Positions 5,319-63,909 of a stretch of 64,000 nt of DNA are shown here, one piece after another. The position numbers were made by a program, and so were the translations under genes. Below the pieces are notes generated by a model. The model did not search any database and was not told the origin of the DNA. It worked only from the letters and a program-made list of their open reading frames with translations. The DNA is from Prasinococcaceae sp. CCMP 1430. Taxonomy: Eukaryota > Plantae > Prasinodermophyta. The stretch lies in assembly GCA_013416795.1 (NCBI GenBank), contig RQSC01000018.1, positions 193,274 through 257,273 on the forward strand. Direction: 5' to 3'. Each line of letters starts with the position of its first letter. Position 1 is the stretch's first letter.

Positions 5319-8300
5319 TCATCCCTCAAAGATGTCCTGCCGGTGGATCGTGCTCTTCTGATTCTTGTCTTTCGAAATACGCCCTGGTGTGCGTGCGCGC
5401 GCGCGCGCGCGTGTGCGTGTGCGCGTGCGCGTGCGCGCGCGTGTCAGATCTCGATATGCGGACAAACTGAGACCACACGTCTCAAAGCCACAGCCCGCAC
5501 GAGGGTACTTCGAGCGCGTCAAACAGGCGCATGCGCAAGCGAACGCGCACGCACAATACCGCTCAGCATGCTCTCGAAGGCCGATTGAGCGCGCGAACTT
5601 CTCGTCGTGAGTAATCACCAGCAGTTGGAAGTTCTCCTGTCCGCGTCTCGCGTCCATGAGTCGAGTGAGCGCCTCAGCCAGAGCCTGCGCGTTGGGCTCA
5701 TCGAGGTTGGTGGTCGGCTCGTCAAGCGCCAGGATGCCGCATGTGACGCAAAAGCTCTCCGCAAGCGCCAGTCGGATGATGAGGCTCGCCAGCACGCGCT
5801 GTCCCGCCGAGCAGCGACCGCGCATGTCCAGCTCCGCGCCAGACGAGCTCGTCATGACCTGCCGGGCACGCCGGCGCGAGGACACGAGCGCGCGGACCGG
5901 AATGCCGAGCTGCTGGGTCAGCACACATGCATGCACAAGGGGGGTGCGCTCGTCGAGCTCGGGGCGACGAGACCCACACCGCGCGACAGCGCTGGCGCGC
6001 ACGCACCACGCGGTAGTTGTGCGACCGGCCCCGTGCATTGGTGCCCTCATCCACGTCCGACCTGATCTCCAACTTGTCGATGTCCTGGTTGCGGTACACG
6101 CTTTGCCACAGCTCCTTGATCGTCGAATTGATCTCAGCCATCTTCTGCTGGTGAAAAGAGGTCAGCGCCCTGTCCAGTGCCTTCATGTACTTGTCCAGGT
6201 CGGCACACGCCAGCTCGGCGCTCGTGAGCTGCACCAGCATGTCCCGATACTTGTCATCGACGTCGACGTACTGGCGGTCAGCCAGTTCTGCAGCAGACTC
6301 CTGCCGGCCGGCCTGGATGGCCTCCATGGCGCCGCGCTGCTGCTCTCGAGCCTGGCGGGCGGCGACAGCCTCCTTGTTGGCATTCTTGAGCATCACGCCA
6401 AGCTTGCGCGCGCGCTCTGGCGAGGCTCGCACGCGTGCGGCCGCGGTCTTCTCACGAAGTGCATCGAGCTCTCCGCGAAGTTGGCGCAGTTTCAGGTTGT
6501 CTTCGAGGTTCCGACGCGTCTGCGCCATCTCCGCCAGCGACTGCACTGCGCTGTCTACCTTGGCCTGGGCGTCGGCGCGCCGCCGTGCGGCCTCGGCCTC
6601 CTGCGCATTGAGTTTTTCGAGCCTCTCGCGCTCGCGTTCAACCCCGGTCGTGCGACCCGCGGCCTCGTCTGCAGCGACCGCCTTCGCGAGCGAGGAGATC
6701 TTGTTTTGCGAGCTCTCAGCCTCCGTCAGAAGCTCCACGATGCGCCGCTCCTCGGCTTGCGAATCGGCGGCAGCGGCGTCCCGCGCGTTCGCCGCATCGG
6801 TCCTCTCCCGCGCATAGCGCGCCGCCGCCTCGTCAGCCTGCGCCGCCTCAAGTTTGAGCGTTGCCGCATTGTTTGCCGCCTCTTCGGCACCCCTCGCCGC
6901 GTTCATGCGCTCCGCAGCCTTGTGCTTCTCATCGCTGACCCGCTGCCGCGCGCTCGCGTGCTCCCGCTCAAGCTGCGAGAGCTCGTCCTTCTTCGACGAT
7001 AATTGCTGCATCTTGAAGTCGCGCTTTCGCTGCGCGCCATCGCGTTTCTCCTCAGCGTCATGAATCTCCTCAGCGACAACAGACACGTCCCGTCCGGGGC
7101 GTCCGATGCCCGATCCGAGCTCGCGGCGCAGGGTGGCCAAGTCGGCTGCTGCATGCCTGGCCTCGAGAGCGGCGCGCTCAGCTCCCTCGGCCAAAGGAAG
7201 CACGTCGCGCAGCTTCTCTTCGTCGTCCGTGACCTTGCGCGCCGTCGTCTCGGCGGCATCCGCCGCTTCCTGCGCGGCCGCCTGAGCCTGCTCAGCATCG
7301 TCGAGCGCCTGCCGCGCCTCCGGGATCTGCATTTCGAGCTCTTCGACGCGACGCAAGAGCGGCTCCACCTTTTCGAGGATTTCGACCTGCCCTTTGGCGG
7401 CCGCTGCCAACTTCTCACGTTCCATGACCTTCGCTGGCAGGCTACGCAGATTGCGGTCCAGGTCTGCGGCCGTCTTCTCTCGTTCGGCAACGTCAGCGAA
7501 GGCACGGGCGCAGCATGGGCACCTATTGTCCTCCTTGATCTTCTTTGTGAAGTTCGCAAACACGCTCTTCGTGGCCTTGGCGTACTCGAGCTCTGTTGTC
7601 GCCGCCTGAAAGCGCTGGCGCGCGTCGTGCAATGCCTCGGGGGAGGCCTCACTGATGGAAGCAGCCCCAGTCTGGAGTGTCACCTCCTCACGCGCCGACG
7701 TACACTCCTCCTTTCGAGACGACAGCACGCGCCGCGCATCCTCCACTCGCCCTGCGGCGCTTTCAGCTGCGCGGCGGGCGGTCGAGGCGTCCGCATCAAC
7801 CGTCTTGCGCTGCTCCTTCAATCGCGCGATCTCAGCTCGAACACGCCTCAAGAGAGCATCGGCCGTATCGCCAGCGTCTGCTTCAACGCCTGCGCTGCTC
7901 GCAGCATCGCAAGCCTTCTGCAGACTGCTCGCAGCCGCCGAATCGAGGCGGTCCTTCTGCTGCTCTGTGAGGTGTAGGCGGGCATTTGCCTGCTGCGCCG
8001 TCATCAGATTCTGCTGCTCCTTCTGAAGGGCGGAGATTTCGGCCGACGCATCGCGAATAATCTTCTCGATCTCGGCGATCTGCGTGTCGTAGTCGCCGGA
8101 GCTGAGCTGATTCCGCTTGGCCTCGACCTGCTGGCTGAGATTCTCAGCCTCGTTTTCTAGCCTTTCGACCGCGCGTACTGCGTTCTCTCCCTCGCGCATC
8201 TCGGTGCGAAGCTGTGCCTCCCTGGCAAGTTCGGCCTCCGCCGCCTCCTTTTTCATGCGCGCGGTCTCCGTCGCGCCCGCCAGGGTCTCTGCGGCGGCAT

Positions 8301-47593: not shown

Positions 47594-50500
47594 CTACCCT
47601 GAGCATGATGCGCGCTGTCGGAGCGTCCTCGTGCACCTCTCGCCATAAAATGCGCGGTACGGCTCCGGCAGCTTGGCCAGCGCATCGCCTGCCTGCCTCG
47701 CCAGGCTGGCGGCCGCCTCGGCACGCACCGGGTCGCGATTGCCGTACAGGTCCTTGGCAGCGAGCTCGGAAGGCGCAAGCCCGCGCCAAAACACATTGGC
47801 AGAGACCGAAAAGTCATCGAGGGTGGCCACCGCATGCACCCAGAGCGCCGGAATGTACAAAGTGTCGCCAGGTCTGAGCACGCATTCGAGTGCGCCCATG
47901 TGCTGAGCCGCAGCGAGCATGTCGGCCTCGTCCAGCAGCCGCGTCGAGCTGCTGTCGGGTGCGATGCCGAGCGAAGTGGCTGCCGCTGGTGGGAAGAGCA
48001 GCACTCGCTTGCTGCCACGCAGCTGCACGAGTGCGTTTTCCATCACGTCGAAGTGGGGCCACAGGCTGCACCCAGGCGAGGTCACGCGAAGTATGCTCGA
48101 GTGATACCTCTCCGGGGCGTACAGCTCGCTCGGGAGCGCAACGCCTTGAGCAAGATCCGGGAAATCCTTTTCCAGATTCGCCCTGTCGCTGCGGGAGTCG
48201 CGTCCAACCGAACGTAGGTACAAGCATTGCGTTGAACGTGCAGCGCCGCCATTGGGGGAGGGGATCGCCGCGGCCTTGCGGACAAAGTCGCCGAAGCCCA
48301 TCCTGACGTACTTGAAGTTTTTCCCGACAAAGTCCAGCGCCGCAGTGTCGTTGCACTCGTGCACGGTGACACTCGCGCCGGCACACGCGCTTGCAGCCAT
48401 CCTCTCGGGGCTCCATGCGTCCGGGCCAGCTGGCAGAACCTTAAGCCCGGTGATCACGGCAGGCACCATGCCGTGCCGCAGGTCGGCGCCTATAGTACAC
48501 ACATCTCGTTCGCCTGCCTCCAGAACCCTCACACGCGCAGGCAAGGGCTTTGGACAAATGTGTCGCGCAGCATCGGCAGCGCCCGCAACCCCGGGTGTCC
48601 GCAGCAGCGGCGCCATGCCTGCCTTCGGGTAGCAGGCCACATCGACAACGATGTGATCCACGCGCGGTGCGTACGACTTAACCCGCTCGATGTGCTGCAC
48701 GATGCATCGCAGCGGTGGTCCGCCGCACGAGCGCGCCGTTGCAAGGCTCTCGAGCGACGCCGCGCAGCCTCGCGCCCACGTCTGGGTCTCGTCGGTGCGC
48801 ACGTTGGCGTGTACGTGCAGGATGCCGCCCTCGGGGCGCAGGGCCTCGACAGCTGTGTGCCAGGATTTCTCAGAAGTTGGTATCAGGCCGAGCAGGACAC
48901 GATGCGCGACGCCTTTGGGCGCCATTTTGCGGTTGTCGCCCTCACGTACCTCGCAGCGCGCCTCGACACCGTTCCGGCGCAGGTTGTGACGGAGCGCCTG
49001 CGCGGCGGGCGCATTCCACTCGCACGCCACCAGATGCGCCACACCCGCTCGCCGTAGCAGCGGTATGGTAAAGTATCCGATGCCTGCAAAGAGGTCTACC
49101 ACAGTTTCGCCCCGCGCATGCACGTCGCCCATGCGTCGCTTCTCCGTCCCATTTCCGGACGAGTACATGACCTGCGTCACGTCCAGGCCGTACACCACGC
49201 CGTTGTCGCGCACCTCCGTCCAGCCTCCGGATGCGGCCGCGCCCGAACGTGCGTACAGGATCGCGGCGCGGCTGTGGCGCTTCTCGCTGGCGTCAATCTC
49301 CGCCTGGCGCGCGAGGCGATTGCAGCCCAGTGCGCGCGCGACGACCTCCCAAATCGAGGGGGGTGCGTCCACGCCAGCTGTGGCAGCCGCCTCGATGTAG
49401 GGAGCCCACTCTTCGGCGGTGAATGCGCGCTGACTGAGCATGGCCACGTCGCCCAGCATCTCCCAACGCAGCGCTTTCGCCTCGGCGGCTGCGAGCGCAT
49501 CGGCAGCCCGGGCGTCGAGAGATCGCGTGCCTGCGGTGGTTGCGGCGCGCAGGTAGTCGCACAAGCCCACGCGCAGGGCATCGCGCGGCGTGAGCGATGT
49601 GCGAGTGAGCACAGCGCTCCGGCCGCCGTCGCCCTGGCCGCCCTCAACCCCGAACTCCTCATCGCGCACAACCCGCGCCTCGGAAACTCTGTCGAGAAGG
49701 CCGATCGCGGCAGCGAGTATCTGAAGGACGCGCACGTCGGCGTCGGATTCATCACTGCCATCGGCTGCCACGGCAAGCTCGCCATAGGTACTCGCCCCGG
49801 AGGCGGCCGAGCCAAGCACACCAACAGCGGCTGCGTGTACGATGGGCAAGACGACCTCGGTTTCTGTCACGGGTACGCGCATCGAGCGGTCAAGGAGCTT
49901 GGAGGACTTGAGCGCATCCTTCCACGCCTTGGCGCAGCGCTTGCGCACCGCGAGCGCCGCAGGCGGGGCGAGCGCGCACTGCGCGCTCACGTCGGTGGCG
50001 GGGGCGCCATCAGTGACGTTGAGCGCACCGAGCGCTGCAGGTATGTCGGAGCAGGTGGGAGCGTAGACACATGTGAGGTGGTCGAAGGCCTTCTCGAACC
50101 GCTCGATGCGCGCCCAGTTGTCGTGCATCTTGCCGTTAGATAGCCGCACGAGCGTGCGCAAGTACCGGTCGGACACAAGTAGCTCGCCGTTGAGCGCGAC
50201 AGGCACCTCGAGGCGCACCGAGCAGCGCACGCTGCAAACGTGGCGCTTGTTGGAGGGCGCAATGCCGGACTCCCGCAGGCCAGCGCCGACGGCCGCCGCC
50301 ACGAGCGCAGCGGCGGCTTGTGCAGAGCGGCACTCGACGGCGAGGATGAAGGGCTCGAAGCGCAGCGTCAGCGGCCCCGCGTGCGGCGAGGTATCGCGCG
50401 CGCAAGAGGCGGCTCTCACCACGGCCTCGGCGTCGGCGAGGCCGTGCTCGAGGTAGAGCCACTCGCCGCCGCCACGCTTGCGCTTTGGGTCGAAGTCGGT

Positions 50501-50767
50501 CTCGTCGCCGCCGTCGCCGCCAGGGGCGCGCGGCTCCTGGAAGAGCGCGAGCCTGCCAGAGCAGCTCGAGGTTGTGTAGTAGTCTTGCGAGGAGTTCACG
50601 CGCGCACAGAGCTCTTCCACGGGCGCGTCCACGCACCCCTTGCGACTACGGTCGACGCGCGCCGCTCCGTAGAGCGCCGTCATCGCTGCTGCGCGTCGCT
50701 GCTCAAACGCGGTGCCGCCGCCGCCGCCGCCGCCGCCGCATGCTGCCGCCGGCGTTGCCGCGACCAT
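47594..50767 (-). CDS. Wybutosine biosynthesis triple fusion TYW3 (methyltransferase) - TYW2 (aminocarboxypropyltransferase) - TYW5 (JmjC hydroxylase)
   Basis: TYW3: DRSRKGCVD..YYTTSSCSGR..FEPFILAVEC. TYW2: MYSSGNGTEKRRM..VVDLFAGIGYF..LGLIPTSE..VKSYAP. JmjC: LYLRSVG..LWPHFDVMEN..GSKRVLLFPP..LYIPALWVHAV. One uninterrupted 1057-aa ORF. Confidence 0.92.
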   Translation of the reverse strand: MVAATPAAACGGGGGGGGTAFEQRRAAAMTALYGAARVDRSRKGCVDAPVEELCARVNSSQDYYTTSSCSGRLALFQEPRAPGGDGGDETDFDPKRKRGGGEWLYLEHGLADAEAVVRAASCARDTSPHAGPLTLRFEPFILAVECRSAQAAAALVAAAVGAGLRESGIAPSNKRHVCSVRCSVRLEVPVALNGELLVSDRYLRTLVRLSNGKMHDNWARIERFEKAFDHLTCVYAPTCSDIPAALGALNVTDGAPATDVSAQCALAPPAALAVRKRCAKAWKDALKSSKLLDRSMRVPVTETEVVLPIVHAAAVGVLGSAASGASTYGELAVAADGSDESDADVRVLQILAAAIGLLDRVSEARVVRDEEFGVEGGQGDGGRSAVLTRTSLTPRDALRVGLCDYLRAATTAGTRSLDARAADALAAAEAKALRWEMLGDVAMLSQRAFTAEEWAPYIEAAATAGVDAPPSIWEVVARALGCNRLARQAEIDASEKRHSRAAILYARSGAAASGGWTEVRDNGVVYGLDVTQVMYSSGNGTEKRRMGDVHARGETVVDLFAGIGYFTIPLLRRAGVAHLVACEWNAPAAQALRHNLRRNGVEARCEVREGDNRKMAPKGVAHRVLLGLIPTSEKSWHTAVEALRPEGGILHVHANVRTDETQTWARGCAASLESLATARSCGGPPLRCIVQHIERVKSYAPRVDHIVVDVACYPKAGMAPLLRTPGVAGAADAARHICPKPLPARVRVLEAGERDVCTIGADLRHGMVPAVITGLKVLPAGPDAWSPERMAASACAGASVTVHECNDTAALDFVGKNFKYVRMGFGDFVRKAAAIPSPNGGAARSTQCLYLRSVGRDSRSDRANLEKDFPDLAQGVALPSELYAPERYHSSILRVTSPGCSLWPHFDVMENALVQLRGSKRVLLFPPAAATSLGIAPDSSSTRLLDEADMLAAAQHMGALECVLRPGDTLYIPALWVHAVATLDDFSVSANVFWRGLAPSELAAKDLYGNRDPVRAEAAASLARQAGDALAKLPEPYRAFYGERCTRTLRQRASCSG

Positions 50768-54130: not shown

Positions 54131-55185
54131 TTACGCGCGCTCAGCCTCGGCCTTTGCTCTCGCTGCGCACACGTCGATCCTGTCTAGGAGCCAGTGGTCC
54201 TTGGGCGCGCCCGCTGCCCACTCGCCGAGGCTCGCCTCATCGTCTACATCCACGAGCATCGGCAGCGTCGTCGCGGGCGCCACGGACGCACCCGCGGCGG
54301 CGAGTGCAGCTTCAGTGCGTGCGCGTACCTCGGATGTGCTCCATGGAATGTCCTCGAAGGCCTGCGGCACGCTGCGCCCCCCGAGTGCGAGCAAGTAGTA
54401 CCCACCGTCGGCGGCAGGGCCAATGCAAGCGTCGAAGCCGGGCGGGTGCTCTATGCCGCGCACTGCAGCGACTGCCGCGTTGATGGTGTCAGCGGTCAGG
54501 CCCGGCGCATCGCTGCCGATTGCGACGACGACGGGCACATCCGCCGCCTTTGCGGCGGGCTCGTCGCTCCCGTCCGCCTCCCCGCATGCGAACGCGTCCT
54601 CGAACGCGTGCGACAGCCTGGGTCCGAGGCCGTCCGCTTGGTGCTGCGCGACGACCTCATATTCCCGTGCGAGTGCGCCGCCGCGCAGTGACGCGACAAA
54701 CTTTCTCATCGCCCCTACCTCGCTTGCGTCCGCGACCATCAACGCCTTGCGCGTGAGCGCCGTCACACGCGCGCCCTCAACGAGCGTGTGCTCGAGCATG
54801 CGTGCGTAGAGCGCTGCGGCAGCGCCATCGCCGGCCGTCGCCGCGAGGCGTGTCTTCACCTTGCCCGCGACAGGCAGCCTCGCAAAGACAAGCAGTGACG
54901 TACTTGCCGGCGCTCGCGCCTTCGCAGCCCCCCCATAGCCCGCGTCCGCTTCCTCGGCAGCTTCCTGGGTGGCGCGCAGCAGCGGATGCGCACGGGAGGG
55001 AGGGGCGGTGTTAGAGCGCCTATGCGCCTCGAGGCTGCTCGCCCGTGCGGCCGCGTGCGCGGGCCGGCTGGGCGCGCCGTCACCTCAATGCCGTGCCCTT
55101 GCATTGCCGCCGAGGCCTCATTGATCGACACCGTCGGCAATTGCGTCGCCCTGCGGTACGACTCGCCAGTCCTGTTCGACGCCAT
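54131..55185 (-). CDS. DUF2064 / TIGR04282-type CofC-like transferase; 2 exons (55185-55084, 54964-54131)
   Basis: LVFARLPVAGKVKTRL, Q..GLGPRL..AF, AIGSDAP, GPAADGGYYLL, DIPWST, LVDVDD. Phase-0 GT-AG intron 54965-55083. Confidence 0.85.
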
Positions 55186-55527
55186 CGCGCGCGTGCCAGC
55201 GCGCACCGGCCGCGCGCGGCTGCAGACGCGCGTGAGCGCGCCAGTCGTGGGCCCGCCCACGCACGTGCAAGGTCGCAGGGGTGCGTCGGCAGGCAGCGCT
55301 CCCCAACGAGCGCGCAGAGAAGCTCTCGAGGCTGCGTGCGCACATACACACGCACACGTATGGCGCGAGCGCGGCGCCTTGCCCCGACCTCCGCGGCCGC
55401 AAGGTGTGCTCAGACGCACAGCCGGGAAATCCTCTCGCGGCATTGGCGGCGCCTGCAGCGGACTGCGCGTTGGCGGCAGAGGGTGCTGCGGGGCGACACG
55501 TTCACACGCGTGCGAGACTTTCGATGC

Positions 55528-58500
55528 TTACTCCACGCCAGGGACGTCTACGGCGCCGCGCTCCTTGTCTCCCTCGTCTCCTATCGCCGCCTCGGGCGCG
55601 TCGCTCAGGACTCGCACGAGGGTCTCGAGCATGGCGGTGCCGCCGGCGTCGGCTGCGGTCCGAAAGTCGCACCCCGCGGGCGTCTCCCGTGACCAGTTCA
55701 TGCTGGCGATTGTGATGTCGTCCGGGCAGCCACGATTGGCGCGCCGCACGCTGGCGAGGTAGGCCAAGTGAGCAGCGGCTCCTTTGGCCTTGACGCGCCG
55801 CACCGCTGCGGCAACCTCGGAGTCTTTGGCGACGTCCCAGAGGCCGTCCGACGCGACCACTAGCTGGGCCCAACCCACCGCGGGAGGCAGCCTGCCCAGG
55901 TCGACCTGGCACACGTGTGGCGTGCCCATGACGCAGGCGTGCGCACGCGCATCACCCAGCGAGCGGCTCACGGCGAGGCCCCCGGGGTACACGCGCAGCG
56001 GCCCGACCAGCATGCCCGTGGAGCGCTCCTGTATGCGTCCCACGACAGCCCCGGCGGCCCTGACGCGGCGGACCTCTGACTGCGAGTCTTCCGGGCGATG
56101 GTCCACAGAGAGGCGCACGTGCGCGGGTACGATGCCCTTGAAGAGGCCCGAGACGGCGCTGCCGCACTTCCCCCCGCTGCCTGGCCCAGCGCCCTCGTGC
56201 ACCTCGGGCGTGATCAGTACGCACCTCGAGTCGCCCGCGTTGGCGACTGTGACAACGTCGCCGACAATCACCACCACTGTAGCGGTAGCCCCCGCTTTGA
56301 CGCACGCGGCCTTGATCTCGGCGTCGAGTCGCTCCATGGCAGAGGTCAAAGCCGCGGGAAGAGCTGCCACGAGCGCCCCATCGGTCGTCGGCGACGCGCC
56401 TACTACGGGCGCCAGCGCGTCGAGCAGTGCAACCGGAAGGCGTTGGCGCGCCATCTCGGCTCCCTCGGCGCCACCGTGCCCGTCAAAAACACAGAACAGC
56501 CGCGCGCCCTTGAGCGCGCTCGCCTCGAGCTCTTCGTCGCTGAGGGTGCTGCGCCATTCGAGGTAAGTGCCGCCCACACCGCTTTTGGCCGCGCGCCTCC
56601 CCGAGGGCAGCACCAGCACGCGGTCCTCTCCCTTGGCACACCTGGCGTGCACACGCCAGTCGATCGTCCAGGGGCCATTGACTGGCGTGTCCGTTGAGCG
56701 GCGTGGGTGCGTGAACGAAATCATCTCGTCGCAGCTGCCGGGGGGCGCTGTGAGAGAACCCCCTGTTGCGGCGCTGCTGTGGCCCATGGCGGCCCGCTTG
56801 GCGTCGCATCTCCCCGCTGCCACGGCGCGCCGCAGGCGCAGCCTGGCTCTCGCTCCTCTCGCCGCCAATCTGGCCCAAGCAAGGCGAAGGCGCGCTCCAG
56901 CGAGCTCCCCACTCGTCATACCGGTGGAGACGTACTTGAACACTGGCTTGACGCTGGTCAGCAGGTTCGCGGGATTGTCCTCGATCCCGTCCCCTGTGTC
57001 GCGCGCCGCGCCCCCACGCGCCGAGCCCTCCCTTGCGAGCGAGTGCAGGTTCATCAGGAGCGCAACGATGTCCTCGCGCTCCATGATGCCGACGCGCTCT
57101 GTTGCACTCTCGAGCTCTTCATTCCCGGCTGCGCTGGCGGCGGCTCCTTGGCCTGGCGCGGTGTCCATGCCGCCAGAGCTGGGGGGCGCGCTCGCGAGCC
57201 AATCGACCGCCCAGAAGTAGCCCCCGACCACACCCATCGCCGTCACCAGCACCACTAGTGCTAGCGCCAGCCCCCCGAGGGCGCGCCACCCTACCGCGCT
57301 CGTCGCGTTTGCAGCGCCCGCGCCGTACACGACCCCCAAAAGCCCATTGTCGGTGACGGTGACCCCAAAGATCAAGCCTACGAGCGCACCCACACCGTGC
57401 ACGGCGATGGTGTTGAGTGCATCATCGATGCGCACGTTGGCGAGCGCGAGAGTGGCGGCCACGAAGCCCAGCCCTGCACAGGCTCCAATGAGCGCGGCCA
57501 CATGCAGGTCCACGGTGCCGGCGACTGCAGTGGCCGCCGCAGCGCCTGCGAGTGCCCCGCGCACGGCCGTGTAAGGCGCTAACACGCCGAAGCCTCGTCC
57601 GCGGTGCCACGAGACCACGGACACGGCGGCGCACGCTACAAGCGCGCCCGTGGCGGGCGCCATGACCAGCGCGGCTGTTGCGGCGCCGACAACGTCCGCA
57701 GAGCCCATTGTACCGCCTGCGACGAGAGCCCACGGTACCGCGAGCGCACCGCTCAGCAGCAAGCCCACGAGCAGCACGAGCGCGCTCACCCCACCGAGGC
57801 CGTCATTCGAGCCCTCGAGGCCGCTCGCAGGAGCGTCTTCATCACCGGTGCCCCTGGGCGCCTCTTCCTTCGAGGCGGCCGGCCTTGCAAAGCGCCGCCG
57901 GCCGCGCATGTCGCGGCGCGATCCACGCACCAGTGCCATCGCCAGCACGGCCGACCCCGCGGCGAGGTGGGTGCATGCCGCACCCCCTACGTCGAGCGCG
58001 CCCGTGGCTGCCAGCCCCCCCCCGCCACTTGCGCCGGGGGCGAGCGCGCCCCCGTGGGACCATGCGACGCGCATCGCCACAGGGCTCACCACGCCACCGA
58101 TGAGCGCGCCCAGCGAGGCGCTCGAGAGCATGGTGGGCGCGCGGTCCCCCGCCCCGGCAGACGCGACTGCCGCTGCCAACGCCGCCAACGCGGCCAGGTG
58201 CGCGCGCGCCAGCTCCATTTCGCCGCCCCCGCCTTCGATCGCACCGAGCCCCGTGGCGCCTCCCGCAGCAACCTGAGCTGCTTCACCCGCTACGCGCCAA
58301 CCCCACGCTGCGAAAGCGACCACGGCCGCAACGATGGCCACGACCGCGCGCCCTGCCTGCGCACCCGCGCCGCCCCCCGCCTGCACGCTGCCCGCGGCGC
58401 CCCCTCCGGCGCCGCACCCCCTCTGCCTTTGCTGCCGACGGCGGCCGTTGCGGAGGCGGCTCTGCGAGCCCAGGCGCTGGCTCTGGCGCCGCAGCCGCCG

Positions 58501-58588
58501 CAGCGGCGTGCTCTTCACCGTGACCTCCCGGAGCAGGAGGAAAGCGCGCGCCCGCCGCGCCCCGGGGAACGCAGCACAGACCCCTCAT
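55528..58588 (-). CDS. Ammonium-transporter (Amt) domain fused to a C-terminal PP2C phosphatase; start tentative (ATG 58588 via a short intron, or ATG 58218)
   Basis: Single open frame 58518-55528. The Amt part has RVAWSHGG, LDVGGAACTH, GALAGAAAAT and IDDALNTIAVHGVG. The PP2C part has GEDR, VFDGHGG, GATATV, ANAGDSR, SVDHRP, GLAVSRSLGD, ASDGLWD and DDITI. Confidence 0.88.
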
Positions 58589-58754
58589 CCGGGCGGGGCC
58601 GGGACGGCGCCGCGCCGCTCGGCCAACCGAACCGAATCGAACCAACCAGAAACGAGCAGCCCCTCTCGCAACTCAAGCACAGTCGTATCCTCGCGCCCAT
58701 ATGCGCCGCACGGCACGGTCGGACGGCCGAACCGTACGTGGGTACATTCAGTTA

Positions 58755-58786
58755 AACTGACTGTGTGGGTTCAACTGACTGTGTGG
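58755..58786. promoter_or_regulatory. 14-nt direct repeat AACTGACTGTGTGG (period 18) in the divergent AMT promoter
   Basis: Copies at 58755-58768 and 58773-58786, next to CCGTAC and GGTAC cores (about 58733-58745). Confidence 0.45.
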
Positions 58787-59236
58787 TCGGGCTCTCCCGT
58801 TCCAAAAGGCGCAGCCCACATGATGGGGCCTGTTCCCCGGCGGACCTCTCGCGAGGGGGCACCGGGCCAGGTCAGCGGCAGGTGCGCGCGGTCCCTCCAC
58901 CGCGGGGCGCCCGTGCGGGGCCTCGGGCGCCCGCGCGCATGCTCTGCACGCAGCATTCGGTTGGTCAACGCGCGGGGGCGCTGGGGCTCGGGTTGCGGCC
59001 CGGCAAATAATACGACGCCGCGGTGGCCCCACTCGCGGTGCCGCGCCACTTTGCGCCCCCGCCGCACCGCCACCCTGCGCCGCAGAGGCGCAGAGGCGGC
59101 AGCGGCGGTCGCTGCCGGGGGGAGGGGTCTGCGCGAAAGCTGCAGGGCAGAGCGGCGGCTCGTGCGAGGCGCGTTCACGAGCGCGCGCGCCCACTGCTGG
59201 CGGGGCGGGGTGGTGGGACGCGCGCGGGCAGCGGCG

Positions 59237-61042
59237 ATGGCAGGCGAGCTTGACGTGCTGGCGGCGCGCGTGACCGAGGCGGAGCGCGCCGCCAATGCCC
59301 TCTTCATGGCGACGGGGGTCGCGCTCGTGATGCTGATGCAGGCGGGCTTCGGCGCGCTGGAGGTGGGGGCGGTGCGTACCAAGAACACGCGCTCACTGAT
59401 GCTCAAGAACGTGATTGACTTCAGCGTCGGCACGATCATGTTCTGGCTGGTGGGGTACGGCGTGGCCTTCCCCGGCGCGGGCGCACGCGGCTTTGCGCTG
59501 CGCGGCAACGTTGCCGAGGTCGCGGGGGAGGGTGCGGGCGTCGCGGGCGAGGGCTCCTTCCTGCACTTCGCGCTCCTGCTTGCCTACGCGAGCACGAGCA
59601 CCACCATCGTGTCGGGCGCGCTCGCGGAGCGCACTCGTCTGAGCTCCTACGTGGTCTTCGCGGCACTGGCCTTTCCTTTTATGTCGGGTTTGCCGATGCG
59701 GTGGACGTGGGGCCACGAGGGGTGGCTGAATGCGGCGGCGCGCGACGGGGGCGGGGCGGCGCCGCAGCCGCAGCTACTCGACGTGGGTGTGGTCGACTTC
59801 GCGGGCAGCGGCGTCGTCCACATGGTGGGCGGCGTCGCGGCGGGCGTGGGCTCGTGGATGGTGGGCCCGCGACTCGACGAACGTGGGGTGGCACGCTTCG
59901 CAGAAGGCTGTCGCGAGGGCGACTTCATGCCTCACGCGCCCGCCTTAAGCACACTCGGCGCGCTGATCCTGTGGTTTTGCTGGTACGCCTTCAATGCCGC
60001 GTCCGCGCTTGGCGTGGTGGGCAGCGTGTCCGTGGTGGCTCGCGTGGTCGTGACCACCACCCTGGCGGCGGCGGCCTCAGGCTGCTCAGGCTTTGTCGCC
60101 TTCCTGGTCTTGCCCGCGCAAGTGCAACCCTTCGAGATGATCAATTGCCTGCTTGCCGGTCTCGTGGCGGTCACAGCGGGTTGCCCGGTGCTGAGCAACT
60201 GGGCGGCAGTCGTGGTGGGCGTGCTAGCGGCCGCTGTGTACTTGGGCTCCTCACGCCTCGCGCGCCGCATGGGCGTGGATGACCCCGTGGACGCCGCTGC
60301 GCTCCACGGCTGCTGCGGCGCGCTGGGAGTGCTAATGGCAGGATTGCTTGCGGACGCCGAGCTGCTGGAGTCGACCTACGGCGCTGGTGCGGGGCGTGCT
60401 GGCGCTTACGGCGTGCTCCTCGGCGGCGGGTGGCGACGGATGGGTGCGCAGGTGGTGGGCGTGTGTGTGTATGGCGCGTGGGGGCTGGCGCTCAGCCTCG
60501 TACTATTCGGCGCGCTCAAGCGCTCGCGTATCGTGTGGTGGGCACGCATGAAGAAAGCCGAACAGGACGGCCTCGACCTGTCGCTGTTCACGCGCGAGGA
60601 GCTGGTGGAGCGCTTCGGGAACGGCCTGCGCGTGTGCGCGCACGAGGAAATGAGCGGCATCGACGTGAGCTACCACGACGGGCTGGCGTACCCGCCGTAT
60701 CTCACGCCCTTCATCGACAGCATCAATGTGCTGCGCGAGCTGCAGCTGGCCTCGATGTGGGGCACCCTTCCCATACCACCGAGCGCCCCGGGCGAAGAGA
60801 GCGGCAGAGACGGCAGCGAGGACGCCGACGACTCGTCCGCCAGGGGTCAGGCGGGGTCGACGGGCTTCGACCTGCTTCTTCGCCCCCGCGTGACCGACTC
60901 CAACAGGCAGCCCCTCGCAGCACGCGGCGCAGCGTACAAGCCCGACATGCGCCGCCGCTGGGGGAAGGGGGTGGCGGCCCCGCTCGCCGCGCCCACCGCC
61001 GCGGACGGTGCGCTCGCGCGCAAGACCGACGAGTCGCCGTGA
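59237..61042 (+). CDS. AMT1: Ammonium transporter, AMT1 type
   Basis: MQAGFGALEVGAVR.KN, TIVSGALAER, DFAGSGVVHMVGG, LILWFCWYAFN, LAGLVAVTAGC, DDPVDAAALHG, LRV..EEMSGIDVSYH. Confidence 0.94.
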   Translation: MAGELDVLAARVTEAERAANALFMATGVALVMLMQAGFGALEVGAVRTKNTRSLMLKNVIDFSVGTIMFWLVGYGVAFPGAGARGFALRGNVAEVAGEGAGVAGEGSFLHFALLLAYASTSTTIVSGALAERTRLSSYVVFAALAFPFMSGLPMRWTWGHEGWLNAAARDGGGAAPQPQLLDVGVVDFAGSGVVHMVGGVAAGVGSWMVGPRLDERGVARFAEGCREGDFMPHAPALSTLGALILWFCWYAFNAASALGVVGSVSVVARVVVTTTLAAAASGCSGFVAFLVLPAQVQPFEMINCLLAGLVAVTAGCPVLSNWAAVVVGVLAAAVYLGSSRLARRMGVDDPVDAAALHGCCGALGVLMAGLLADAELLESTYGAGAGRAGAYGVLLGGGWRRMGAQVVGVCVYGAWGLALSLVLFGALKRSRIVWWARMKKAEQDGLDLSLFTREELVERFGNGLRVCAHEEMSGIDVSYHDGLAYPPYLTPFIDSINVLRELQLASMWGTLPIPPSAPGEESGRDGSEDADDSSARGQAGSTGFDLLLRPRVTDSNRQPLAARGAAYKPDMRRRWGKGVAAPLAAPTAADGALARKTDESP

Positions 61043-62189: not shown

Positions 62190-62808
62190 CGCACGCCGCG
62201 GGGAGCTCCCCCGCGCGCGCGCTCTGCCCCCCCACCCCCACCCGCACCCCGCTGCCGGGCGTGCTCGCGCACGCTTCGTGCGCCGGCGTTTCGCGCTCTC
62301 GGCGAGCGATACCAGCGGGGGACGCAAAGAAGTATCGAAGCACTGCGGCGAGACCAGAGCGGGTGCGCCGCGCGTCGGGAGCGGCGCGCGCCAGTGGCCG
62401 CGGTGGCGGGCGAGGCCCCCCCGCTCCCCCCCCTCCCAAACTCACCCACCTCCGTGCCTCGCAATGCTGCTGCCGGCGACCCCGGCGGCCGGCGCGGCGC
62501 CGGCGCGAGGTGCGCAAAATTGGGCAGCGCGCGCGTGCCCGGCGCGAGCCCCGGAGGCGTGTTCGCTGAACACATCAAATTCCCATGCGCACGACAAAAA
62601 GGCCCGCACCGCGCGACGGTTGCCCGATCCGCCCGTTTCGGTACGTGCGGATGTCAGCCGCACGGACGCGGCGGGGGGGTCCGCGCGCATTCGGCGGGGC
62701 GGCCGAGGCGTGCCACAGTGCACACGTAGCCACAGCCCGCGCATCCCCTCGCCTCACAACTGCCACGGTGTACACACGCAGGGCACACAAGCGACACTCG
62801 CGGTCATC

Positions 62809-63909
62809 ATGGGGCGCACGTCTGTCGCGACAGGCATGATCGGCATGGCGATGCTCTCGACGACCGGCACCAGCACTGCCCGTTCGCTCCTCGCGGTTGC
62901 TCCGAGCACGGCGGCTACCAATGGCAACCAGACGGCAGTAGCGGTCGCCGAGGCGGCGCTGTCGAGCGAGCACGGCAGCTCGCTCATGGGCACCAACGTG
63001 TGCGAGGGCAAGAAGCCACTCCACGCCGACGCCAACGCACAGGACGAGTACTTCAAGAACGTCGACTGCTTCGTCGACACCGTCATCCAGACGCTGGAGC
63101 AGGCCGGAGCCAATGTCACCGAGGGGTACAACGGCGAGCTCGACGTGGGCGACCGCGTGCCTATCACCGAGCCGTACTGGAAGGCGGGCCTGTGTCCGGT
63201 GAATGTGCACTGGCACTACGGCGCCGAGCACCTGTCGGTCGGTGAGTACGACGAGGCCGGCAAGGGACCCAAGCCCATCGTGGACGACTCCACCCCCACC
63301 AACACCACCATTCTTTCAAAGGCAGGCGATGAGGACGTGCGCGAGGGCTTCCAGTGCCACCTTTACAACGAAAGTGAGAGCAGGTTCACCGCCGAGTACG
63401 ACTGGAAGCACTGTGTGGGCATGCGCGTGGGGAAGACGTACGAGGTCCACTGGCCTCACAGCGCGGCGGGCGCCTGCGGCACGCCCAACCAGTACCAGAC
63501 CCCTTTCTACGACGGCGTCTTCTGCACCGACGGCGTCATCTCGCTTGACCCGCTCAACACGTACCAGAAGATCGGCGTGCAGTCGCAGGTGTACACCATC
63601 GTCAACGACGAGACGTACTACTACCCCGACCTGATCCGCGGCATGATCGTAGACGGCGACTACGGCACGGACGTTGCTATGTACACCGGTTCGACGACCG
63701 GCACGACGCGCGACAACGAGGTCTGCTCTCGCTTCACGCCGATCACCTGGCAGGTGGACCGCAAGTGTCACCTCATCTCGGCGTCGTCGTTCGATAAGAT
63801 GTGCGCGGACATGAAGGCACAGCGTGACGACATGAGCAGTGATTTGTACGCCCACGGCTCTCGCGAGCTGGTGGCTGACGAGCTGGCGGCGAACAACCAT
63901 CAGGGTTAG
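62809..63909 (+). CDS. Delta-class carbonic anhydrase (TWCA1-like), hydrophobic leader; probable 5'UTR intron 62641-62781
   Basis: LCPVNVHWHYGAEH, YEVHWPHSAAGAC, IGVQSQV, YTGSTTG, ITWQVDRKC. Confidence 0.9.
   Translation: MGRTSVATGMIGMAMLSTTGTSTARSLLAVAPSTAATNGNQTAVAVAEAALSSEHGSSLMGTNVCEGKKPLHADANAQDEYFKNVDCFVDTVIQTLEQAGANVTEGYNGELDVGDRVPITEPYWKAGLCPVNVHWHYGAEHLSVGEYDEAGKGPKPIVDDSTPTNTTILSKAGDEDVREGFQCHLYNESESRFTAEYDWKHCVGMRVGKTYEVHWPHSAAGACGTPNQYQTPFYDGVFCTDGVISLDPLNTYQKIGVQSQVYTIVNDETYYYPDLIRGMIVDGDYGTDVAMYTGSTTGTTRDNEVCSRFTPITWQVDRKCHLISASSFDKMCADMKAQRDDMSSDLYAHGSRELVADELAANNHQG

Follow-up and report, generated by a model that had tools for sequence, protein, structure and literature searches.

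Why should a gene that joins an ammonium transporter (Amt) fold to a PP2C phosphatase lie head to head with the gene of a separate Amt transporter? The question arises from a locus in the assembly of Prasinococcaceae sp. CCMP 1430 (GCA_013416795.1), within a stretch of 64,000 nucleotides of contig RQSC01000018.1 (positions 193,274 to 257,273) that we call the window and whose coordinates are used throughout. We find that in Prasinoderma coloniale the two genes make up a real and hard-wired module for the uptake of ammonium. One partner is a transport-competent-looking Amt, and the other, judged from its sequence, is a pseudo-transporter that carries an apparently intact phosphatase. Fusions of this class have already been published; what that description did not include is the pseudo-transporter state, the conserved and duplicated association with a bona fide transporter, and an example from the base of the green lineage.

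The gene pair and its second copy

The fusion gene (FUS1; PRCOL_00000477) occupies 55528–58518 on the minus strand as an open reading frame (ORF) of 996 amino acids. It is colinear with all other sources over 55528–58420, and its 5′ end in the window, 58421–58518, is unreliable. The transporter gene (AMT1a; P0136/P0002) lies on the plus strand at 59237–61042, stop codon included, and encodes 601 residues; the long plus-strand ORF that contains it covers 58334–61042, with the annotated protein starting at the ATG at 59237. The head-to-head layout reported in the initial annotation of this locus was confirmed for both ORFs, their domains and their divergent strands. Its figure of about 650 bp for the region common to the two genes was roughly right: the spacer measures 718 bp in the window, from the top of the fusion ORF to the transporter ATG, and the two start codons are about 0.8 kb apart when the better-supported fusion 5′ end is used. 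The divergent spacer at 58543–59236 is presumed to be a bidirectional control region. G+C content across the region is approximately 70%.

Cluster look-ups in EukProt assigned the fusion to PRCOL_00000477 of P. coloniale and the transporter to an unnamed entry of 601 residues. The two genes also adjoin on a 24.9-kb Tara metagenome scaffold (L001), which carries a fusion ORF of 1003 residues (99% identical) next to the 601-residue transporter, and the uninterrupted fusion ORF and the transporter recur on several further ocean contigs from independent Tara samples. The 601-residue transporter protein is present unchanged in public collections. Between the window and L001 the fusion differs by 12 synonymous and 6 non-synonymous codons and the transporter by 4 of each. 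The counts are small, but by them the fusion hardly resembles a gene in decay. Both genes are covered by contigs of a marine metatranscriptome (X2) and of run X1 of P. coloniale, which an automated guess makes probably a culture transcriptome; contigs from such RNA libraries report presence and not expression level. In these same contigs the spacer is uncovered, and no joints with canonical intron ends were seen on either gene.

The pairing is not chance, because it recurs a second time in the genome, as PRCOL_00004094 (an Amt-PP2C fusion, FUS2, 46% identical) and PRCOL_00004095 (an Amt, 53% identical). FUS2 was recovered as P0168 (991 residues, E 3e-116), the sole close relative of FUS1 in an exhaustive HMMER search. 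The P0168 cluster contains PRCOL_00004094, and P0003, the closest relative of the transporter, falls in the cluster of PRCOL_00004095. The two locus tags are consecutive and, on metagenome contigs, each gene has an unrelated 3′ neighbour, so that the genes of the second pair, if adjacent, meet 5′ to 5′; from the tags and the neighbours we infer a head-to-head order here too. Contigs of the second fusion (L004, L007) and of the second transporter (L002, L003) showed no overlap with one another and all end in the 5′ spacer, and the genes flanking the second pair have no match in the window. The initial annotation had regarded a lack of conserved linkage in relatives as grounds for abandoning its proposal; linkage is found within the genome itself, in a second, anciently diverged pair.

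A tree of the Amt domains places the two fusions as sisters (support 100/100) and the P. coloniale transporters in a clade of their own (99/99), which indicates that the two genes were duplicated as a unit. This happened long ago, and the arrangement was kept while the copies diverged to about 50% identity. The tree is unrooted and contains no land-plant sequence. A 97/95 split divides it, with the fusions, the P. coloniale transporters and the PP2C-less algal proteins P0005 and P0006 on one side, and Chlamydomonas AMT1, other algal Amts and bacterial Amts on the other. The fusions, the P. coloniale transporters, P0005 and P0006 also have in common a post-tail helix of the form PPYLxPF...L. 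By tree and motif the neighbour appears to be a sibling of the fusion-type Amt domain, and its membership of the plant AMT1 clade, implied by the initial label of canonical AMT1, is putative. Because the fusion branches are greatly elongated and unusual in composition, any finer placement is unsafe.

A third transporter paralogue (P0004), 65–70% like the second transporter, occurs on ocean contigs L008–L011. Within its residues ~60–115, inside helix 1, it has an in-frame insert of 56 residues that resembles an intron left unspliced. The 3′ neighbour of P0004 encodes a cyclic-nucleotide-binding ion channel, and the contigs end upstream of the gene. P0004 carries no EukProt P. coloniale label and may come from a sister species.

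The Amt-like and PP2C parts of the fusion

The degenerate Amt-like membrane domain of FUS1 is encoded at 57190–58347 on the minus strand and comprises helices 2–11, helix 1 belonging to the disputed 5′ segment. Its match to the Ammonium_transp family is weak but significant (Pfam E 2.6e-13; TIGR00836 E 6.5e-13, residues 58–416). Scored against a profile of 120 Amts, FUS1 reaches 30 bits and FUS2 85 bits, compared with 216–294 bits for other algal fusions. Pore sites are given here in the residue numbering of AmtB (Trp148, Asp160, His168, Phe107, Phe215, Trp212, Ser219 and His318). Both P. coloniale fusions keep the equivalents of Asp160, His168 and His318, with the same residues aligning to Af-Amt1, and both have lost Trp148 (replaced by Ala or Leu), Phe107 (Leu), Phe215 (Ser) and Trp212 (Leu). 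The GAxAER motif is lost or weakened in both. The tail motif is reduced to the vestige GGMDTAPG in FUS1 and is not recognisable in FUS2, and neither protein has a Ser or Thr in the regulatory column. These features mark the Amt part of the fusion as a probable pseudo-transporter.

An AlphaFold2 model of the membrane part shows 11 long helices and an Amt fold (predicted template modelling score 0.74, mean predicted local distance difference test (pLDDT) 68). With 11 helices and the usual Amt topology, the C-terminal PP2C is predicted to face the cytosol, as Amt tails do. Foldseek matches the model to Amt structures at template modelling (TM) scores of 0.74–0.76; the best are the Amt sensors 6eu6 and 8qj3/8qj4/8qpf, with AmtB also matched, and the sensors lead AmtB and Mep2 by a small margin in a model whose input alignment contained ordinary Amts. 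Membrane domain and phosphatase are joined by a linker of ~210 residues (56548–57189), of low pLDDT, in which the vestigial tail lies. Also within it is the helix EDIVALLMNLHSLA, the homologue of the helix that follows the tail in the neighbouring transporter.

The PP2C domain spans ORF residues 658–913 (55780–56547, minus strand; Pfam PF00481 E 3.7e-30). All of its metal-binding and catalytic motifs are present in FUS1 (KGED, DGHGG, GDSR, DHRP, SRSLGD, ASDGLWD and DDIT), and the signature motifs, metal-binding Asp included, are intact in FUS1, FUS2 and three other fusion lineages. By these motifs the phosphatase appears catalytically intact. Its nearest solved relatives are the clade-A plant PP2Cs ABI1, ABI2 and HAB1, with ABI1 first (E 4e-18), a ranking that we give little weight because the PDB is rich in clade A. 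A tree of 89 PP2C domains was unresolved and is compatible with a single origin or with separate origins of the five fusions.

AMT-PP2C proteins were described in 2024 (PNAS) under the name AMPC, as PP2C.D members of charophytes and bryophytes (PMC11665922). They resemble FUS1 in belonging to the green lineage and in their order, an N-terminal Amt and a C-terminal PP2C on one polypeptide (PF00909 and PF00481), and the idea that the phosphatase controls phosphorylation of an AMT tail is common to both cases. The fusion described here differs in its host, a member of the Prasinodermophyta, the AMPC paper making no mention of Prasinoderma (PMC11665922). It differs also in its decayed Amt part, which has no regulatory tail of its own, and in its conserved and duplicated head-to-head pairing with a separate transporter, which the AMPC paper does not contain. 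Bacterial AMT-SpoIIE fusions, reported to be phylogenetically distinct and independently evolved (PMC11665922), likewise combine an Amt domain with a phosphatase of the PP2C superfamily; our comparison with them is with their published description.

Three more Amt-PP2C lineages were identified (P0171/P0328, P0184 and P0192/P0331; loci L005 and L006) from MMETSP culture transcriptomes and SRR13370240. Their Amt domains are far better preserved, P0171/P0328 and P0184 scoring 237–294 bits, and P0331 lacks both pore His residues. Of the five fusion lineages, three have neither Ser nor Thr in the regulatory column. It took an exhaustive HMMER search to bring up the paralogue and the remaining fusions: a word-index search with the whole fusion returned nothing but the fusion itself, and one with P0171 yielded bacterial fusions alone (Amt-PII and Amt-kinase), with no named AMPC from plants. 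Searching the ESM Atlas gave no usable match. When JGI metagenomes were scanned with the paralogous fusion, no pattern match encoded a relative; a scan with the five-fusion alignment led to 80 fetched loci, each of them an ordinary PP2C gene in which no frame encodes an Amt domain.

The transporter tail and the proposed role of the fusion

AMT1a has a full Amt domain (59303–60583, plus strand; Pfam PF00909 E 2.5e-82, TIGR00836 E 1.7e-90) with its pore residues kept. Alignment with 15 relatives shows that the equivalents of Trp148, Asp160, His168, Phe215, Ser219 and His318 are all retained and that the Phe107 equivalent is Tyr; the closest solved structure is 6eu6 (E 9e-41). The cytosolic C-terminal regulatory motif, LRV..EEMSGIDVSYHDGLAY, is encoded at 60626–60691 and is complete with respect to the family pattern LR..EE..G.D...HGG.AY. 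It is followed at 60692–60745 by the post-tail helix PPYLTPFIDSINVLRELQ, which marks the Amt subfamily that includes the membrane domains of the fusions. Both the tail string and the serine codon at 60668–60670 are where the initial annotation had placed them. This residue, Ser478, sits in the sequence GIDVSYH, in the same column as the Ser of Chlamydomonas AMT1 (GLDASKH) and the Ser or Thr of many algal Amts, the column having been checked against Chlamydomonas AMT1 and 119 other homologues with the pattern G-x-D-x-[S/T]-x-H. Ser478 is invariant in 12 of 12 full-length population variants and also in paralogues b and c. The sequence thus points to a transport-competent Amt with a serine in the column equivalent to T460 of plant AMT1.

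In Arabidopsis, phosphorylation at T460/T472 shuts the AMT1 trimer off (PMC9516733; PMC6760267), and ABI1, a PP2C, was found in 2022 to bind AMT1;1/1;2 and to promote dephosphorylation at the conserved Thr (PMC9516733). The initial annotation had invoked both the T460 shut-off and ABI1 as an activating PP2C, correctly by that account; whether ABI1 dephosphorylates AMT1 directly ‘remains to be tested’ (PMC9516733). The tail motif of the transporter next to the fusion matches that of the Arabidopsis switch (T460/T472, with CIPK23 as kinase and ABI1) and likewise has a hydroxyl residue at the regulatory column. In both systems reactivation is tentatively ascribed to a PP2C, and ABI1 is the best solved relative of the fusion PP2C. 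The switch residue is Thr there and Ser here, and the transporter described here lies outside the clade that contains Chlamydomonas AMT1. ABI1 is soluble and controlled by abscisic acid, whereas this phosphatase is anchored in the membrane through an Amt fold and encoded next door to its putative target. Prokaryotic amtB-glnK pairs and Amt-PII fusions, the latter numerous among the transporter homologues, likewise link or fuse a transporter to a cytosolic gating protein. Their regulator is PII, which plugs the pore in response to 2-oxoglutarate and ATP and is not a phosphatase, and amtB-glnK is an operon rather than a divergent pair.

Our preferred reading, which we hold tentatively and as rather less than probable, is that the Amt-anchored PP2C dephosphorylates the tail of the neighbouring transporter in trans. 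The Amt-like domain would act mainly as a membrane or assembly module that brings the PP2C up to Amt trimers, by joining mixed trimers or by lying alongside. The PP2C would then remove the inhibitory phosphate from the transporter tail, at Ser478 or at nearby sites, and uptake would re-open, with the common spacer co-regulating both genes. Action in trans, placement by the Amt fold and co-regulation through the spacer are the three points that we infer. That the Amt-fold pseudo-transporter is moreover a dedicated regulatory subunit on Amt trimers, whose PP2C erases the tail phosphate and whose divergent pair duplicates as a unit, seems to us rather unlikely when taken as a whole.

Co-assembly of the fusion with its neighbour, as proposed in the initial annotation, was addressed by complex prediction. 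AMT1a residues 1–505 with fusion residues 25–480 scored 0.45, against 0.00 for the best of three controls; of 78 solved complexes 51 reach the mark set for this score, as do 2 of 108 mismatched pairs. At least 56% of the contacts are common to the prediction runs, with a partner pLDDT of 63 or more. The outcome weakly suggests that the two proteins may co-assemble, and it counts here as a minor point rather than as proof of binding.

Several considerations weigh against trans-dephosphorylation as we propose it. Passes in the range of the complex score are more often wrong than right: passes at 0.60 or below came from only five of those 78 solved complexes and from all four of the passing mismatches (of 180). 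Since Amt trimers have already been solved, the model may recall the family interface. The identity of the two Amt domains, 24%, is moreover much lower than that between AMT1 paralogues known to form heterotrimers. The retained phospho-site noted initially is present in the sense that a Ser occupies the T460-equivalent column; as an argument it is weak, because Ser or Thr is found there in 46 of the 120 homologues (38%), bacterial Amts included, so that the presence of Ser478 alone discriminates little. Phosphorylation of Ser478, binding of the two proteins and co-regulation of their genes are putative. Plant AMT1 subunits with a defective tail reportedly silence their neighbours in a trans-dominant negative manner (work said to be that of Ludewig 2003, Loque 2007 and Neuhauser 2007); by analogy, a tail-less fusion subunit within a trimer might inhibit rather than reactivate. 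Finally, the two genes may lie side by side only because of a past local inverted duplication.

Among the alternatives, the one that fares best, a doubtful but quite credible one in our judgement, is that the fusion is an ammonium receptor-phosphatase. It would form a non-transporting sensor homotrimer that switches its PP2C on other cytosolic nitrogen-signalling targets, the transporter being linked to it by origin and co-expression only. The top structural matches of the membrane model, at the TM scores given above, are two solved Amt sensors, Ks-Amt5 (6eu6) and Sd-Amt1 (8qj3, 8qj4, 8qpf), which have the same architecture, a non-transporting Amt fold followed by a C-terminal cytosolic signalling enzyme. 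Retention of Asp160 and the twin His together with loss of the transport gate would suit such a receptor, as would the excess of synonymous over non-synonymous change between strains (12 versus 6). However, the lead of the sensors over AmtB and Mep2 is slight and the modelling alignment included ordinary Amts. The two sensors are bacterial, their outputs are a histidine kinase and a diguanylate cyclase where the fusion has a PP2C, and, unlike them, both P. coloniale fusions lack the canonical Trp of the external ammonium-binding site along with its surroundings, which leaves the known sensing site missing. Such a receptor would also not explain why the transporter partner has stayed with the fusion since an old duplication.

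We consider it improbable that the two genes have no present coupling, or a negative one. The pair would then descend from a local inverted duplication of an Amt gene in which one copy captured or kept a PP2C and decayed as a transporter; if that product entered trimers, it would act as a dominant-negative brake and not as a reactivator. Membership of both genes in one Amt subfamily with the same post-tail helix fits local duplication, the great length and deviant composition of the fusion branches also speak for this reading, and the absence of a functional tail recalls the trans-inhibition just mentioned for plant AMT1. Yet the arrangement survived an old duplication with both partners intact in both copies, the catalytic motifs of the PP2C are all conserved in both fusions, synonymous changes outnumber non-synonymous ones, and RNA-library contigs cover both genes.

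Self-regulation, in which the fusion would itself transport ammonium and its PP2C dephosphorylate its own tail, has been put forward for streptophyte AMPC, as control of AMT phosphorylation, and for bacterial AMT-SpoIIE (PMC11665922), and might suit the algal fusions P0171/P0328 and P0184 with their 237–294 bits against 30 and 85 here, but is very unlikely for FUS1, given a decayed Amt part in which, as in FUS2, the Phe gate, the Trp148 equivalent and GAxAER are lost or weakened and no Ser or Thr occupies the regulatory column (GMDTAPG in FUS1, no tail in FUS2), a column equally bare in three of the five fusion lineages; without tail motif and pore gate, a regulatory subunit fits better than a self-regulated transporter.

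The fusion 5′ end, neighbouring genes and significance

The sources disagree over the 5′ end of the fusion. The window has a segment of 122 nt at 58421–58542 that is specific to it, and three other sources have an unrelated segment of 219 nt in its place: Tara contig L001 (6869–7087), the 2024 DNA run X3 of the same organism, in one 18-kb contig, and metatranscriptome X2, in a contig crossing the junction. With the 219-nt segment the fusion gains an in-frame ATG and its first membrane helix and becomes a protein of 1003 residues (P0001), and the first residues of the published model, MGCGAGGG, agree with this version; in the window version, no ATG occurs in frame ahead of residue 101. Since only the 219-nt version provides both the ATG and helix 1, the 1003-residue form was used for structure work. 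The 122-nt segment probably arose as an error of local assembly or as a replacement confined to this strain. We rejected the possibility that it is an inverted or diverged copy of the 219-nt segment, the two having only chance matches of 7–11 nt.

Other discrepancies were noted nearby. Within the spacer, at 59005–59015, a cluster of seven substitutions and insertions of 1 and 12 nt separate the 2024 DNA run from the window. One low-depth metatranscriptome contig omits 224 nt of the N-terminal region of the fusion (within 58139–58364); the omitted piece has non-canonical ends (CG..CA) and a length that is not a multiple of three, and probably reflects chimeric assembly of the contig or variation between strains, not an intron. 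The 5′ spacers of Amt and Amt-PP2C genes repeatedly break metagenome assemblies (L001, L002, L004, L007, L008–L011), either as an N gap, which in L001 lies in the spacer at 6732–6831, or as contig ends 160–720 bp upstream of the start. Short palindromes occur in the upstream spacer of the second fusion (L007, 50–88 and 544–584). Comparison of the spacers of the first pair, the second pair and the third transporter revealed no similarity outside coding sequence.

The published model of PRCOL_00000477 (1288 residues) runs past the fusion stop codon at 55528–55530 into the next gene (window 54131–55530, minus strand). That gene encodes a DUF2064 protein with an ORF at 54131–54859, whose conserved N-terminus lies upstream of any start codon in the ORF; it probably has a first exon of its own (MASNRTG..., within 54856–55443) and an intron. 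The 1288-residue model looks like a merge of two genes, because of the stop at 55528–55530 and because metagenome gene calls separate the genes; no RNA contig spans the junction between them. Downstream of the transporter, at ~62800–63909 on the plus strand (L001 2189–3289), lies a gene with a CA_like domain (PF10563, putative carbonic anhydrase). Further away, at 47594–50767 on the minus strand, an ORF of 1057 residues looks like a multi-enzyme wybutosine fusion, with Pfam matches on the Tara gene call to TYW3, a TYW2-type methyltransferase and a JmjC/cupin (TYW5-like) domain.

Reactivation of phosphorylated AMT1 is known in outline only, with one soluble PP2C, ABI1, reported to take part. 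An Amt-anchored phosphatase encoded beside a transporter, twice in one genome, offers a simple two-protein system for this reactivation step, almost free of introns and expressible in yeast or oocytes. The range of AMT-PP2C proteins, until now reported only from charophytes and bryophytes, is extended to the Prasinodermophyta, which branch deepest among green plants, and to further marine algae; this extension bears on when and how the PP2C lineage involved arose. The pair also bears on how a globally distributed ocean picoalga tunes its ammonium uptake. Should the fusion prove to be a dedicated regulatory subunit, eukaryotes would have an equivalent of the amtB-glnK pair of prokaryotes, and the origin of AMT-PP2C proteins would be pushed back to the base of the green lineage.

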